From Ramazzottius varieornatus (taxonomy: Eukaryota > Animalia > Tardigrada): 64,000 nucleotides of DNA. The stretch lies in assembly GCA_001949185.1 (NCBI GenBank), contig BDGG01000007.1:186001-250000 (forward strand). The letters are read 5' to 3'. Shown here piece by piece: positions 215 through 47,720 of this stretch (positions are counted from its first letter, which is position 1; each line of letters opens with the position of its first letter). The position numbers and the translations under genes were made by a program. The notes beneath the pieces were generated by a model. It saw nothing but the letters and a program-made list of their open reading frames with translations, ran no database searches and was not told the origin of the DNA.

Positions 215-284
215 TACCATCCGAGCAAAGCTACACGCGAAGGTAACTTTGAGTAGGAGTATAATATGTCAAACAGATTTTCAC

Positions 285-1408
285 CTGTGCGTTTGGAGGT
301 GGCGCCACTTGGTATGTCGAGGGACCAGATCTGCCACCGGTACCACTGCTGCCACCAGCCACTTGTTCGTTCTTCCACAGTCGAAATATGGCGGTGACCA
401 TTTAACGGGACCCGGGTCAGCTTGCGGTTCAGGTGGTCCGAAGAACTCGGTGGTCGTTTGTGTCCCATTGGCATACTTGATATGCACCGAGTACGCCACT
501 TTCTGGTAGTCGGAAGTGCTCTTGTCGGGCAGCCAGGAAGTGAACCACTCGTTGATACGGTACAAGGGATGCGTATAATTTGAAGTGGACATTGAGGAAA
601 CACCTGATCGAGGAAAATACTTGTTTCAACAGACGTTACATAGAAGCTGGGCAAATGAGAACTGAACCACATCTTTTCCACAAGGAGCGCACGTTGTCAA
701 TATTTTTGGCTGGTAGCGTGCGCAACTTGCAGCTGATTTCTCAACTGGCGCACGCTTTCACTGTCGTTAGCTGAAAGCGTGCGCCACTTGCGAAAACGAT
801 CTGGTTCAGTTTAATTTCCCAGCGTCCACAGGTAATTTTCAATGTTACCTGCCTAAGTCTCGTACGTCGGTCATCAGAAGCGTGGAATATCGCTTCGGGT
901 TGATCGGGTCGTTGAAGTCATCTCCACGAGCCGCTTTCGGGGCGAACAGCGGAAACGTCCGATTGTAGAAATTCCGGTACCAATTCGGGTAGGACACGTT
1001 CTGGTCGAAGTATATCGCACTGGCGTTGATGGAAGAAACAGCAGCCACATCCGCCAAGAGCGAGAGGTAATAATACATCAAGCCGGCTTCTTCGGCGTCT
1101 TCGGCATTGCGGAAGAGGAAGCTGTAGAAGAAGGCGCGATTGAGTGCAATGTTGTGAATTTGAGCCAGGTTGGTGCGGTTACGGTATAATGGGTCAAGAT
1201 ACAGGTCCTTGATATCGGGAAGATGGGAGATGGCGTCCAGGGGAATGAAGAGCTCATGGCGAGGGCGACCCTCGCAGTTGGCGCCGCTGATGGACCGGAA
1301 GCGCGTTAGAATCTCGTCGAAACGGTCTGGTGGCTGGTGCTTGAATTGTCCTGCAACAAAATGAAGATGGACAACGAATGTCAAAATTAGATCATCAAGT
1401 AACTGCAT
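285..1408 (-). CDS. GPR158/GPR179-ectodomain-like secreted protein, 5' exons (853-1408, 285-603); continues off the left edge
   Basis: Possible signal peptide, then family-like motifs NRTNLAQIHNIALNRAFFYS, GLMYYYLS, INASAIYF, PLFAPKA.RGDDFNDP, NYT...YRINEWF..WLPD and GPVKWSPPYFDCGRTNKWLVAAVVP. The homologous frame is kept only with a GC donor at 852. Confidence 0.8.
646..823. repeat. Intronic foldback element (AAGTGGCGCAC..GTGCGCCACTT family)
   Basis: Imperfect terminal inverted repeats gctggg..aactgaaccacatc / gatctggttcagtt..cccagc with an internal hairpin tggcgcacgctttca..tgaaagcgtgcgcca. Confidence 0.6.
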
Positions 1409-3599: not shown

Positions 3600-4455
3600 G
3601 TTACTTGGTTTGAGTCCGTGTGTGGTACTGTACAATTTTATTCGGAACCTCAAAGCAAGGTTTTGCACCAAGGTCGTTTCTCATTTCGCAGACACGAACC
3701 GGACTTCAGTGAACTTCATCACGACGCTCTACGTATCTTGAGCACATCTCATCCGAAGGTTCTGAAAGCACTGACCGAACGTCTGCTAGAAGCTCTTACT
3801 CAAGATTGCAATTACGTTTAACTTTAAGAGAGGTTGACAAAACCAGTATTCAACGCGCAGTTACGAAGATCGCAGAGAACGTTCGCTGCCAGTTCTCCAT
3901 ATGCTCGATCACGTTTACTGCTCTAGCGACTCCCTAGCTAGCTTCCGCTTAGCACACGAGGTTTTCCAATGGTCTGGTCATCTTCTACCCACAACTGTTT
4001 TTTCTTCCGTTCTTGGGCGCAAACATCAGTTACGTCACCGCGCATGTAGGGGAATACTGCAACGTAAGCTACTTTCGAAAGTTTATGTGAAGGAACCAAT
4101 AGTGGTATGTTCCTCCTTCGCAGAAAGTTTGGGACACACAGCTACCTTACAAGCAGGGAACCGATGAGGACGTCGAGCGGAAAAGCTTTCGCGCTTTTGC
4201 TAAACTTACATGCTATCGTTCAGTTGATTACTTGATCAGTGCGTCACTTTAAAGAAGATTGAAGTTGGCACAGTGGTGCCTGATAAATGATGCGTGCCAA
4301 AGGCGCACATCAGGTAGATACTACAGTCGCGCGCACATCTGTCTCGAGCGTCCACATCCTGAGAGAAAACTTCGGTTACCATCGGTCACCGATGCGTCCA
4401 CCGTTCTGTTGTCCGTAAGACATGTCGGGGCGGTTGGGTCCTTCGAAGCCTAATC

Positions 4456-5644
4456 CTATCGATCAGAACCACCTACAAAATCAGGCATTCCCATACCTGA
4501 AAGGAGCGAAACAAAGGCACGTCAGACACCATTGACCAAAAAGAAAAGCTCACTTCCAGGTGGGCTTACCTCCTTGACGTCCAGAGTCTAGGCTGAAGCC
4601 GTAACTGCCATCCATTCCGCGGTTGCTTTCCATGCTGCTCTGTTGGTTGCTGCTGCTGCCGTACGGTCCGTAACTCTGGCCGTTGGATCCTCCATACCCG
4701 CCCTGTTGTCCACCGTATCCTCCTTGGCTGTGGCCTCCATACTGACCGGAAGGCTGACCACCGAAGCTCGAGCTGCCTCCGAATCGGTCGCTGTCTTGGG
4801 GACGACCACTCTGCTGGCCGTAGCTGGACGAGCCTTGTCCGTATCCGGACGATCCCTGTCCGTAGCTGGAGCTTTGGCCGTATGATCCTCCTCCCATGCC
4901 AGACGGTTCATACTGGTGGGACTGCGAGTCAAATCCGCCGTATGGCTGCAAAGAAAAAAAGAATCGGAAGTTAGAATCGAACGTAGACGGCAATATGCGT
5001 AGGACCTAAAGAAACTTGAGCAGGCGGAAAAGTGCAGTAGGCGTAGGACTGACGTGAGAAGAGCCTGGCAAGCAAGACGGCGGAAATGAAGGCTTGTAGG
5101 CCTTGTGTGGCTAATAAACAAGCAAGCAAAAGGCAGAGCATGACTTACGCCGCCGTAGTTTCCGCTCTGATTTTGCTGGCTGCTGGAGGAAGTGATTGTT
5201 GGTCCAGCGCTCGATTTAAACCTGCAATATCATACAGAGCTCGCAGTTCTTATTCTGAACGAGCTGAAACACAGGCACGTACTCCAAATACTTAAAGGTG
5301 TCCTTGAATGTGTCCAACAAGCAGGGGCGTCTACCACTTCCGCCGTACGTAAGGAAACCTGCAAAGAACACAGATCAACCCAATCCCGCACTTTCATCAG
5401 TGGGTACGTCCTGGAAATTTTTCCGTCCAGTCAGAAAAGCTGTGTAACGGCTCGCTTTGAATGCCTCCTGCCGCAGGTAAAAACGTGACTTACACATTCT
5501 GAGCGGTCCGGTATATTTCAGCTCTTCTTCAAATTCTTTCTTAGACAACGGGGTTCGATATTCCACCGGGTGAAGGGTGAATTTCTTTGATTTTGATGGA
5601 CGATAAACATCATCTCCAGTTTCCGAAACATACAAGGTCGGCAT
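4456..5644 (-). CDS. Gly/Ser/Gln/Tyr-rich low-complexity (prion-like) protein, 5 exons
   Basis: In-phase GT-AG model: MPTLYVSETG..GPLRMC|FLTYGGSGRRPCLLDTFKDTFK|FKSSAGPT..NYGG|PYGGFDSQ..GSYGQSSSYGQGSSGYGQGSSSYGQQ..RQGG|MGMPDFVGGSDR*. Many [G/S]Y[G/S] repeats. Confidence 0.75.
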
Positions 5645-6183
5645 CGTGTAGAAAAATCGTCGATCAAAAATTAATTTACGCCGGTTGTTTCAAAGTTTCT
5701 CAGATGACACAGCAAGCGATGCTTGTCGACACACACAGTCATAACAGACCGCGCTGGTTTCCGCATTCTTGAAAAGCCAGCCTCTTGTTTTACGGACGGT
5801 GGAATTTTCCAGGGTAAGGACACTGGCTAGGTGCAAAGCAAACGTACAAGATTGTTATCGCAAGTGGCGTATTCTTCCAGCAGCTAATAATAAAACGCGC
5901 GCCACCAACGATAACGATCTTGTGACCGAGGCGTGGTTAAGTCTTCCCTATGGCCGGCACCACCCTGGGGCTGATTTTATTTCGAAGGAAAATAATTTTC
6001 TGAATAGAAGTTATTTTCTCTTCTAGCTCTTCTGCTTCCTATTCAGTCCCGCAGGACGCCATTTCTGGGCCATAATCGTGGGGATAATTCATGGTTTCCG
6101 TAACGAGCTTCTACTACGTCACGCTCTGCTTGACTTGGATGCTTTCCAGCTCTGATTTTCTTGTGTTCCTGTTTCTTTTGCAG

Positions 6184-43339: not shown

Positions 43340-45575
43340 ATGCAGCGCATTGATCTGTTAGACTGTAGCATGTTTGGACCGGGAGGCGTAGCCCTTGGAA
43401 GGTTCGAGTTTCAAAAAGTACTACGAGCCGGAACCTTTGGAACCGTCATACTTTACAAGCATCCGGCGGTAGGTCGCAGATTACTCCTTGTAACTGTCTT
43501 TTGTTGTCTTATGTACTACGTACCTTCAGAGGTTTTCCTGTCCCATTGGCCATGGTACATGAGCTACAGTCGGCAGGTTGCGTTTCGTCGAATGTGACTT
43601 CTGGCTGATAGCTACGTCATCCCAGCCGACTGTGTGGTGTATGGTTGATGAGTGGCACTGCCACATTACTACATTGGTTCACCGATCAGCTGATCGTGAC
43701 GTAACGAACCGAGCGCGTAGGACCGTAACCTGCCCACTGTAGCTCGTGTGCCATGGCCTATGAGTCAGGAAAACCTCTGTGTACCGTCTTTCGAGTTCAT
43801 TTGCCTGAAATACCCTTGACGAATGCAGACCCAGGAGCTAGTCGCCGTCAAAGAGGTGAGGATTCCGGACAACGACGAAGGAGCTTACTACTCAACAGTG
43901 CAGCGGGAACTTGCGGTTCTGAGGGTACGATGGTTAGATATCACGAACTGGCAGCTCGTCACTGCATGACCTTGTTGGGTTGCAGAGATTAGCGGGAAAT
44001 GAAAATATTGTGAAAATCTTAGAATACCATGAGGTACAGTGAGCAGTACATGCCAAATTTTTGTACTTGATTTCGATGAGTTTGTCACATGAACTCGTCA
44101 TCTTACTCTTGCCAGATTATCGCGGAGGACAAAGTGCGCATAGTTATGGAGTACTGTAACGGTGGAGACTACGATCGTTACCTGAATTGTAAGAGGCTGT
44201 TACGTGAGACGGTTTTCAGGACTCATACGAGGTCTCAAATTCCCGTAAGTCCTCAGCAATGACTTAGACGATCTGACAAGACTTTGTATTCTAGTGCACA
44301 CAACTGTCCCAGAAATAACACTGCAGTACTTCGTAAGACAGCTGGCTCTCGGTCTTCAGTGCCTCAACGACAAAGGAATATTGCACAGGGATCTGAAACC
44401 AGCAAATATACTTCTTCACACTCGTAACGGGGAGGCTTTGACTCGCGGAACCGATCACCGGAACATTGTGCTAAAACTGGGTGACTTTGGACTTTCTAAA
44501 AAGATGATGACCGACCGTTGGACCAACACAACGTGCGGCACATTAATGTACATCGCTCCGGAAGTGCTAGATAACAGGAAAATCAGAGACGTGACCACGT
44601 TACCGCATAAAGGAAAGGCCGACTTGTGGAGCCTGGGAGTTGTGCTTTTAGTAAGCCTGCTGGGGAAGACAGAACCTGTCCACACAACTCCATCCATTAT
44701 TCTCCAAGTGGCAGATCATGAGAAAATGCACGGGCAGATACAGTCACGAGCGGCGTCTCTAAGTCCAAGTCAAGGTTCGGTAAACTTGAAGAGTTTACTG
44801 TGTGGTTTACTGCAGCCCGACTTCACACAACGCATTGGATTCTCTCAGTTTCGACAGCATCCTTTTCTCACACTGCGTGAAGGTGCGTCGACATTGGCTG
44901 CTGTTGGCCACAGCCATATTTTTGCATTTATATGCTTCGGCTAGTTTAACCAAGGAGCTTCACCGAAATTCGGTAAGTGATGTGCGACTGGTTTTCTTTC
45001 TCTTAGAGTCGACGATTGTCAGTCTGAATGCGATCCGAGAAGCTTTTGTCAACAATGGATATAGCGCACCTTCCGATTACCACTGCATGATGATACAGCA
45101 GCAGGCGACAGACCTGGGCGGTATATCAACAAAGCGGGAATTGGCTATGTTCCTTGCTCATGTCATGCAGGAATCCGGTGGGTTAATGTTTCGCGACGAG
45201 CAACGGGAACAATCACATGGAGCCGACCCTTTTACTGGCAGAGGTTACTTGCAAATTAGAAGCGAGCGTATATATCGGGAAGCTACAGTTGCCCTTCTCG
45301 CAAACGGAAGTCTGAAAGAACCGGCTTCTCTGGTCACCGATCCGCACTTGGTCAGCAGCTCCGAAGAATTAAGTTGGAAGACGGCTTTCTGGTACTGGAA
45401 AATGTATGTTCATGACAGGATGACAGAGAATCCAAGTTTCCTGCAGACTGTGGACCTGTTGTACCCAGGCATTCCAAGATTTGTTCCGGGATCCTCGTGG
45501 AAGTGTGTCGACCCAGATAACAGGACGGAAAAGTATCAAATCACTTGTGCAGCTTTTGGTTTCGATCCGACGTAA
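43340..45575 (+). CDS. ULK/Atg1-like Ser/Thr kinase fused to a GH19 chitinase/lysozyme-fold domain, 500 aa (exons 43340-43468, 43829-43924, 43986-44033, 44116-44188, 44295-44882, 45007-45575)
   Basis: Kinase: RAGTFGTV, VAVKE, QRELAVL, VMEYCNGGD, HRDLKPANILL, LKLGDFG, CGTLMYIAPE, ADLWSLG. GH19: KRELAMFLAHVMQESGGL..DE, GRGYLQI, LVTDPHLV, SWKTAFWYWK. All five introns are GT-AG and in phase. Confidence 0.8.
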
Positions 45576-46279: not shown

Positions 46280-46572
46280 CGCATGTACGCGCCGATTAGA
46301 AAAGTGAGCAGGATGTCGATCTATGACACAGTCATAACAGACCGGATCACTGAACTTTAGGTAAGCCCGCCAAATAAACTTTTATTGCAGTACTCATAAA
46401 TGTTGACAAGAAAAGCGTGCGCACTTGTTATGAAAACACTAGCTAACACACAACAACCATTTCATGATTTGATTGCGTTAATATAAGAGCTCGCTGGATG
46501 ATTCCTCAGTGTGCATAGGGTCGTGAGAACGGTACAGTGTCAAGCAATTTACGCGACAAGAAAGTTCTCATC

Positions 46573-47720
46573 ATGAGTTTCAGTCTATCGAAATTAACCA
46601 ATCAGACATTCGTGTCCACGAATTATAGCAGTATAGTCCCAGGGAAGTTGAACATTACCCATATTTCAGGCCTTACACCACCTGGCTGGAGCTTCGATAC
46701 CCGCCTAAAACCTTTTACCATCAGCGTCGGCGCTGTGACGAACGTATGGCTTTTGTGGCTGTACTGCAGACGTTCAAGCATGCAAACACCGTTTGGTATG
46801 TATCTCATCAGTCTTATTCTGACCAACACCTTGACGGCGTGCGTATGGCAGCCAGTCCTCTGCGCGCATCAACTTTCATCATCATGGACCTTCGGCTACC
46901 ATGCGTGCGCATTTCGACAGTACCTTGGATGGACACTCAACGCAACTTTGAACGTGTCACATTGCTTGATAGCCTTGAACCGCTTCTGGGCGGTCTCGTT
47001 TCCCTTAACGTACCGAAGTACCCATAACACCAAAGTAGCTTGTATCACGTGTGCCCTATCTTGGCTTGCAGTCAACATCTGCACTATCCCGATTGTTGTG
47101 GTAAACGCTCGTCTCACGCGACCTAATGCAAACGGAATACGCCGGTGTACATTGGCAACTGACCCTATCGGGATATCCGGAGCCATTACGCAGATACTCC
47201 TGTACGACCTACCGATCATCTTAATTATCCTACTGTATCCCGTCATATTCTACAAGTCGTTCGTGGGGACAAAACAGAATGAACGTGTGCGAGCTAGCAA
47301 CAGCAACTTTCAGTGTCGTACCGATCGAGCGATCAATGAAAGCACTGTTGGTAATTCTTCGATCACGAAGGGTAGTCGGGTAGGTAGGAAACATCCCGGA
47401 AACCCTTGCTGTAGACGACCGCAGCACGGCAGCACATTGGGCTTCGTAACGCTGAGCTTGACAACCTTGAGCGCGCTGGTATGTTTGGCGCCGAATGAGA
47501 TCTTTTTCACTTTACTGTTGGTGTTTGGTGTCAACCCAACTGACACCAAACACCAACAGTGGTGTGAGGATGTTGCAGCAGTTGGCGGTTGTCTTTGATC
47601 CAATACTCATTGTGCTGGCCAATCTGGAACTGAGAAAGCTGGTTAAGGAAGCTTTTCTTCAACCCAGTATTATCCTGCGGTTTTTCGCCTCCTGTTTAAA
47701 ACCGGTAATCCAACTCGTCA
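46573..47720 (+). pseudogene. Class A GPCR paralog with a frameshift before TM7
   Basis: WTFGYHAC, IALNRFWAV..PLTY, FYKSFV, GFVTLSL. TM7 (LQQLAVVFDPILIVLANLELRK) is in another frame after ~47560. Confidence 0.8.

Follow-up and report, generated by a model that had tools for sequence, protein, structure and literature searches.

Kinases that carry a glycan-binding module, or a hydrolase that has lost its activity, are familiar from plants and bacteria. In the plant LysM receptor kinases (CERK1), in CHRK1 and in the bacterial PASTA kinases (PknB/PrkC), a module of this sort is joined to a Ser/Thr kinase. The plant receptor-like kinases (RLKs) and the PASTA kinases are transmembrane proteins with the sensor outside the cell, placed N-terminal to the kinase in RLKs and C-terminal to it in PASTA kinases, and the module of CHRK1 is GH18-like. 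CHRK1 has been named as a chitinase-related receptor-like kinase (PMC5485988), and chitinases of the glycoside hydrolase (GH) type with C-terminal kinase domains have been reported (PMC6627877). Here, we turn to RvY_11946, a gene of the tardigrade Ramazzottius varieornatus found at positions 43340-45575 (+) of a 64,000-nucleotide stretch of contig BDGG01000007.1 (C7:186001-250000, the window in what follows), whose public model places a GH19-like domain directly behind an ULK-like Ser/Thr kinase. Unlike CERK1, CHRK1 and the PASTA kinases, its product has no membrane segment, carries a GH19 module and belongs to an animal, and it is not a member of their families. A kinase with an integrated glycan module is a known kind of protein; a soluble, animal, GH19-based form would be new.

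We consider it probable that the fusion transcript, in which 44882 is spliced to 45007, is real. That RvY_11946 is a lineage-specific chimeric gene, in which an ULK-like kinase has acquired a captured GH19 body as a glycan-binding module, is a fuller reading to which we would give even chances. The gene comprises six exons and five introns, as a sequence-only reading of the window had laid them out; the introns (360, 61, 82, 106 and 124 nt in order) are all GT..AG and phase-matched, and by script comparison the joined-exon translation is identical to the public 500-residue protein (P0001; GAV01199.1; UniProt A0A1D1VRM5). The gene model is already public as a hypothetical protein, its only database labels being 'hypothetical protein' and 'Protein kinase domain-containing protein', and its GH19 domain was previously unannotated. 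No paper found names RvY_11946, GAV01199 or A0A1D1VRM5, and all three are absent from the supplements of the tardigrade papers checked. Along the protein, the kinase occupies residues 24-307 and is followed by about 10 linker residues and then by the GH19 fold at 313-500. Neither a signal peptide nor a transmembrane segment is apparent, which agrees with the sequence-only reading: the N-terminus is not hydrophobic, and the best 19-residue Kyte-Doolittle window reaches only 1.4 and lies within the kinase. By the same measure, RvY_11946 has no transmembrane segment dividing the kinase from the glycan module, the arrangement that characterises a receptor kinase.

The kinase half keeps all of its catalytic residues. 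Residues 24-307 give an E-value of 2.7e-52 with Pfam Pkinase (PF00069), their 178.2 bits exceeding the cut-off of 31.7, and exon 5 alone gives 3.5e-33. The full set of motifs listed in the earlier reading is present, namely the VAVK Lys51, the alphaC Glu70, HRDLKPAN at residues 146-153 (Asp148, Asn153), DFG at 179-181 (Asp179) and APE at 203-205, and the domain ends with an HPFL motif at residues 304-307. In the glycine loop, the first Gly is replaced by Arg (RAGTFG).

The nature of this kinase is less simple than its motifs. It had been described as ULK/Atg1-like, and ULK1/2 is indeed the best-matching family: the solved structures closest to the C-lobe are those of ULK1/2 (6e-25 to 3e-23), with CHK2 as the next family at 1.7e-14, the named database matches are ULK, unc-51 and Atg1 at 33-36% identity over the domain, and an insert between the catalytic loop and DFG is shared with ULK1, ULK2, unc-51 and Atg1. 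What did not survive is the implied kinship with Atg1. The genome (55.8 Mb in 200 contigs) was searched for paralogs, and in the C-lobe tree the true ULK1/2 clade (Shimodaira-Hasegawa-like approximate likelihood ratio test, SH-aLRT, 97) includes a different Ramazzottius locus, C7:1348.5k, which pairs with Hypsibius ULK1 (100) and is the Atg1 ortholog. RvY_11946 falls in a separate group made up only of Ramazzottius paralogs and one ENA protein (SH-aLRT 90), where it is sister to a paralog on C4 and that protein, P0152. Its kinase end branch (0.52) equals the tree median, so this half evolves at an ordinary rate. A Pfam scan of RvY_11946 returned the kinase and GH19 only, with none of the C-terminal, Atg13-binding ATG1 MIT and EAT domains (PF12063, PF21127) that the ULK matches carry, and the group to which it belongs has other C-terminal domains. 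Judged on these comparisons, RvY_11946 is ULK-like in its kinase sequence only and is not an ortholog of Atg1/ULK1. Because it sits in a separate paralog group and is missing the Atg1 C-terminal domains, the suggestion that it triggers autophagy is unsupported beyond the similarity of the kinase domain itself.

The identity of the other half was not so evident from profiles. PF00182 scores 24.4 bits against exon 6 alone and 21.3 bits against the whole protein, aligning over profile positions 102-156 only, and since both scores miss the cut-off of 25.5 the databases leave the domain unflagged. As a profile match, then, the GH19-like domain of the sequence-only reading falls short; as a matter of homology it stands. 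A phmmer comparison of exon 6 with the GH19 Chitinase A of a moss (7F88) gave 6.7e-16 over residues 41-187 of 188, and 285 GH19 relatives were found at E <= 0.001 among 1.84 billion representatives. The AlphaFold model, built on an alignment of 56 relatives, has a predicted local distance difference test score (pLDDT) of 92.1 and a predicted template modelling score (pTM) of 0.89, and its top 25 Foldseek matches in the PDB are without exception GH19 chitinases or endolysins, the best being the loop-deleted and wild-type moss enzyme with template modelling (TM) scores of 0.72-0.73. Searches and model together argue clearly for homology to GH19 over the whole of exon 6, with a complete fold predicted. 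The moss enzyme, BcChi-A, is a loopless GH19 from Bryum coronatum (PDB 3WH1, 4IJ4, 7F88) and shares with RvY_11946 both the fold and the spacing of the two glutamates, and the tardigrade domain has the short length of 7F88, the loop-deleted form. The two differ in that they are only about 29% identical, that Ser is changed to Arg396, NYNY to ERIY and INGG to LYPG, and that the tardigrade domain lacks a signal peptide and is fused behind a kinase.

Three of these substitutions fall at cleft positions that are otherwise conserved, and it is there that RvY_11946 is unusual. The catalytic pair is intact, with Glu367 (45171-45173, in QES) and Glu376 (45198-45200) lying nine residues apart and aligning with Glu61 (Ala in the mutant structures) and Glu70 of BcChi-A, positions conserved in 92% and 90% of relatives, respectively. 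RvY_11946 also retains the GRG motif, Gln394 and the Trp core. However, the Ser/Thr after QL, which holds the catalytic water, is replaced by Arg396 (45258-45260; Thr or Ser in 80 of 86 relatives), the substrate-binding Asn of the NY motif by Ile400 (45270-45272; Asn in 78 of 86) and the Asn of INGG by Tyr464 (45462-45464; Asn in 40 of the 42 filled rows). The retention of the QES glutamate and the one after it, and the presence of IY (Ile400-Tyr401) in place of NY, had both been read correctly from the sequence, whereas the losses at Arg396 and Tyr464 had gone unremarked in that reading.

The source of such a domain can be sought within tardigrades. Besides RvY_11946, the Ramazzottius genome has GH19 domains at four loci, with the canonical motifs HES...GRGYIQLT(H/W), and GH19 genes are present in Hypsibius and Paramacrobiotus as well. 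In one of the four (L005), a single exon encodes a classical signal peptide and the start of the domain, while another (L003, C6:744120-747419; ORFs 1402-1992 and 253-1269, minus strand) runs on into four LysM repeats and has no obvious signal peptide in its first exon. Grouping the GH19 half of RvY_11946 with the tardigrade-containing clade was not rejected (approximately unbiased test, p-AU 0.27). Moreover, the combination of Arg at the Ser/Thr site with a hydrophobic residue at the Asn site is common to RvY_11946 and three GH19 domains of Paramacrobiotus metropolitanus, two of them in tandem in LOC129589623 and the third in LOC129589608 (P0151, P0056). Unlike RvY_11946, both of these proteins have signal peptides and are free of a kinase. 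The tree in which RvY_11946 and these Paramacrobiotus domains were constrained to form a clade is the best found, with a log-likelihood 19.75 above the free quick search and a p-AU of 0.66, although the clade was chosen after the shared residues had been noticed and long branches are involved. Since secreted GH19 proteins of another tardigrade share them, the changes in the cleft probably predate the fusion. Should this grouping hold, the unusual cleft would be an old, maintained trait of a secreted tardigrade GH19 subtype, neither a sign of decay nor an adaptation to the fusion. A separate horizontal origin of the domain was considered and is unneeded, given the p-AU of the tardigrade grouping and the position beside Paramacrobiotus genes in the best tree. 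Among the closest relatives there is also a tandem GH19-like protein recorded for the mosquito Culex quinquefasciatus (KAL9697266.1, P0003), which may be a real insect gene or contamination.

The two halves meet across intron 5. Beyond 44882, the kinase frame continues for 20 further codons before a TAG at 44942-44944, a stop that the earlier reading had placed within this intron and that frame reading located there. The GH19 frame is open throughout the intron and, at ~44886-44948, some 37 codons before the domain, encodes a stretch resembling a signal peptide, with two Arg, a 13-residue hydrophobic run and ASAS, and with no ATG. Its composition and place suggest a putative relic of a captured secreted gene. 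The GH19 frame has no ATG ahead of the domain, and the first Met to appear, residue 339, is already part of the predicted second helix; the whole domain can therefore be translated only by way of the upstream exons. Of all acceptors in the gene, that at 45006 has the best pyrimidine tract, and the predicted first helix of the domain starts five residues after it. Directly ahead of the Arg-Arg of the signal-peptide-like stretch, the splice donor itself supplies a GTG codon. One might speculate that a change from ATG to GTG at 44883 abolished the GH19 start and created the donor in one step. An alternative strong donor at 44972/44973 (TCG|GTAAGT) was rejected, as it would leave an intron of 34 nt and be out of phase.

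Comparison with the kinase paralogs suggests what the GH19 domain may have displaced. In the C-lobe, RvY_11946 shares 53-56% identity with both the C4:653.8k locus (L007/L012) and the ENA protein P0152, and 40% with RvY_15059 (L008). In these three relatives, and also at the C1:1056k locus (L011), the kinase is directly followed by a C-terminal domain of about 160 residues, in the place where RvY_11946 has its GH19 domain. This domain has no family match in either Pfam or the Atlas, and no remnant of it was found within the window. In the C4 paralog, a phase-1 intron follows 18 codons past the HQFL motif, while exon 5 of RvY_11946 ends in phase 1 only four codons past HPFL; the two introns may fit a replacement of the last exon, although their differing positions make this weak support. 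At the C4 paralog itself (L007 1830-1841), to which the kinase is most closely related, a 10-nt insertion shifts the frame between ADLWS and LGLVLF, which marks either a pseudogene or an assembly error.

Another member of the same ULK-like paralog group offers a closer parallel. At C11:1399.5-1403k, one uninterrupted open reading frame (ORF) runs from the last kinase subdomain (XI, ending HAFL) into a LysM domain, which scores 23.4 bits (cut-off 20.9), so the fusion at that locus is independent of any inference about splicing. As in RvY_11946, a module that would bind polymers of N-acetylglucosamine (GlcNAc) begins a few residues past the last kinase motif. The two genes differ in that the module is LysM rather than GH19, that the fusion lies inside one exon and that an Hsp70-like ATPase ORF (8e-24) follows. 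A second parallel comes from another tardigrade. Of the 150 best GH19 relatives among the 1.84 billion representatives, the 19 of at least 400 residues and one of 354 were scanned for domain architecture, and a kinase domain was found only in RvY_11946 and in one Paramacrobiotus model; no large Atlas cluster holds both a kinase and GH19. The earlier reading knew of no described animal kinase-GH19 architecture, which is in keeping with this rarity among the 20 proteins and with the literature search given above. The Paramacrobiotus model, isoform X2 (XP_055350770.1) of P. metropolitanus LOC129597313 (P0029/P0022), is a protein of 793 residues that resembles RvY_11946 in lacking a signal peptide and in having GH19 at its C-terminus. 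Unlike RvY_11946, it combines a kinase-like domain (1.2e-20), closest to ASK1/MAP3K5, with a canonical GH19 domain (1.3e-11), across a linker of about 270 residues. In the kinase-like domain HRD is kept and DFG is replaced by AGL, so that it is probably a pseudokinase, and a shorter second isoform of the gene omits the kinase part. Because the kinase families differ (ULK-like and ASK1-like), the two evidently represent independent fusions. Together, the kinase-LysM gene on C11 and the Paramacrobiotus kinase-GH19 model raise the prior for a fusion in RvY_11946.

The case for the fusion is nonetheless indirect, as it is built from a domain that needs the upstream exons, from good in-phase splice signals and from an intact, foldable domain. 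The same locus could be explained as an annotation chimera, in which the kinase gene ends at the TAG, yielding a kinase-only protein of about 332 residues that has lost the C-terminal domain of its family, and in which the GH19 ORF is a young pseudogene, derived from a secreted GH19 gene after loss of its start codon and joined to the kinase by the predictor through a chance GT..AG pair. A number of observations are in keeping with this and weigh against a true fusion. The public gene set merges models based on RNA-seq with ab initio ones (PMC5034306), and therefore the public model alone is no proof. In the protein collections, no RNA-derived copy of RvY_11946 was found, its cluster having one member from one contig, and no fused ortholog was found in the 5.8 billion and 1.84 billion protein sets, the proteins of Hypsibius and Paramacrobiotus included. 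Phase-compatible GT..AG pairs between adjacent ORFs are not rare by chance. Only seven signal-peptide-like stretches, that of intron 5 among them, occur in the 127,834 six-frame positions of the window; this rarity speaks for a relic, but the crude rule behind the count was set after the stretch had been seen and is hence biased toward it. A relic signal peptide that can still be recognised would mean that the start codon was lost recently, and an intact ORF of 188 codons is then no proof of selection, as a young pseudogene would look alike. The GH19 half also has a long end branch (1.43 against a median of 0.4) and keeps only 31 of the 42 strongly conserved columns (>=70%), or 74%, against a median of 91% in its relatives. 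What the chimera explains less well is the quality of the junction, where the acceptor with the best pyrimidine tract in the gene stands directly ahead of the first helix and in the correct phase, as well as the state of the domain, which runs for its 188 codons without a stop or frameshift and has a fully foldable core. Nor is the altered cleft likely to reflect decay, since intact secreted genes of Paramacrobiotus share it, and fusions of kinases to GlcNAc-binding modules recur in tardigrades. We therefore hold to the fusion and regard the annotation chimera as the somewhat unlikely alternative, albeit a serious one.

Gene anatomy, the identities of the domains, the states of the residues and the architectures of the paralogs are direct observations. 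Taking the fusion as real, we infer that intron 5 is spliced, that a secreted gene was captured, and that the captured module binds glycans and is coupled to the kinase. The kinase half would stem from a tardigrade expansion of ULK-like Ser/Thr kinases other than Atg1. The body of a once-independent secreted GH19-like gene, now the terminal exon, would have replaced the C-terminal domain typical of the family, and the stretch that once coded for its signal peptide would have been left unused in intron 5, without a start codon. The gene would yield a cytosolic protein made up, in this order, of an active-looking kinase, the short linker and a folded GH19 module of a non-canonical tardigrade subtype, with the Glu-Glu pair kept, Arg in place of Ser/Thr and a hydrophobic residue in place of Asn. 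Such a module may mainly bind oligomers or polymers that contain GlcNAc (chitin or peptidoglycan fragments). Since the Ser/Thr and the two Asn have been replaced, hydrolysis by it would be poor at best. It may also have taken on the function of the lost domain in targeting or regulation and couple the activity or location of the kinase to glycans. A role as a glycan-binding sensor or targeting factor can be put forward tentatively, with the three changed cleft residues speaking against glycan binding and the LysM of the ULK-like paralog on C11, carried in the ORF of the kinase end, adding some plausibility. Tardigrades are without the Imd pathway, Relish and the upstream Toll recognition proteins (PMC7056985), which makes the sensing of chitin or peptidoglycan from intracellular microbes an attractive putative role. 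A far more speculative extension, which we think unlikely, would see a whole tardigrade class of intracellular pattern-recognition kinases, ULK-like or ASK1-like and fused to GH19-like or LysM modules, with RvY_11946 as one that senses fungal, microsporidian or bacterial fragments and signals by phosphorylation.

Two other functions of a real fusion have to be weighed against glycan binding. The GH19 half might be an active cytosolic hydrolase, a chitinase or muramidase directed at the walls of bacteria, fungi or microsporidia inside the cell, and the kinase might either regulate it or be co-delivered with it. Both catalytic glutamates and Gln394 are kept at the spacing of BcChi-A, and the fold matches both the endolysins and the chitinases of GH19, as would be expected of such an enzyme. 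The nucleophilic-water Ser/Thr, however, has become Arg, and two cleft Asn have become Ile and Tyr; mutagenesis of barley and moss GH19 enzymes has reportedly shown that changes at the Ser/Thr and Asn positions strongly cut activity. An active hydrolase seems improbable to us. The sequence-only reading had also raised the idea of an integrated decoy, in which the GH19 domain would bait pathogen effectors that target host chitinases, as in the integrated-domain receptors (nucleotide-binding leucine-rich repeat proteins, NLRs, and kinases) of plants. The analogy with those receptors and the fast evolution of the domain can be cited in its favour, but nothing in the data speaks for it specifically, the GH19 proteins of the source subfamily are secreted whereas the fusion is cytosolic, and we know of no tardigrade pathogen effector against GH19. 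We regard the decoy as very improbable, and binding of glycans remains the function we prefer.

Should RvY_11946 prove to be expressed and to bind glycans, it would to our knowledge represent the first case in animals of a kinase that is soluble and cytosolic and is joined directly to a chitinase-fold module. It would then represent an intracellular counterpart of the plant LysM and chitinase-like receptor kinases and of the bacterial PASTA kinases. Taken with the LysM paralog and the Paramacrobiotus model, it would also point to recurrent building of sensors in a phylum largely without canonical pathways of immune recognition (PMC7056985). The locus may in addition record a mode of gene birth in which the body of a secreted gene is captured as a terminal exon and its old signal peptide is stranded in an intron. 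Knockout is feasible in R. varieornatus by DIPA-CRISPR (PMC11175437), which makes the sensor idea testable in the species itself. The features discussed here are collected in Table 1.

Table 1. Coordinates of features of RvY_11946 (positions in the window) and of the kinase-LysM paralog on C11
Feature	Position	Strand	Description
Exon 1	43340..43468	+	ATG; residues 1-43; glycine-rich loop region RAGTFGTV; without signal peptide
Intron 1	43469..43828	+	360 nt, GT..AG, phase 0; carries inverted-repeat element
Exon 2	43829..43924	+	Residues 44-75; VAVK (Lys51 = 43850-43852), alphaC Glu70
Exon 3	43986..44033	+	Residues 76-91
Exon 4	44116..44188	+	Residues 92-115 and base 1 of codon 116; hinge region MEYCNGGD
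Exon 5	44295..44882	+	Kinase C-lobe: HRD Asp148 (44390-44392), ULK-type insert, DFG Asp179 (44483-44485), APE, HPFL
Intron 5	44883..45006	+	124 nt; donor AAG|GTGCGT; acceptor with long pyrimidine tract
Exon 6	45007..45575	+	GH19-like domain, residues 312-500; stop TAA 45573-45575
Kinase-LysM-Hsp70 gene	L016 = C11:1397000-1406999, ORFs 2541-2996, 4316-5008, 5005-5892		Kinase subdomain, LysM, Hsp70-like ATPase

Two further features of the region may be mentioned. The inverted repeat of intron 1 has arms of 56 nt each at 43527-43582 and 43724-43779, which are 88% complementary and separated by a spacing of 141 nt, and it has the appearance of a palindromic insertion. Downstream of RvY_11946, the next ORF, at 46537-47598 (+), encodes 353 residues that resemble a seven-transmembrane receptor.

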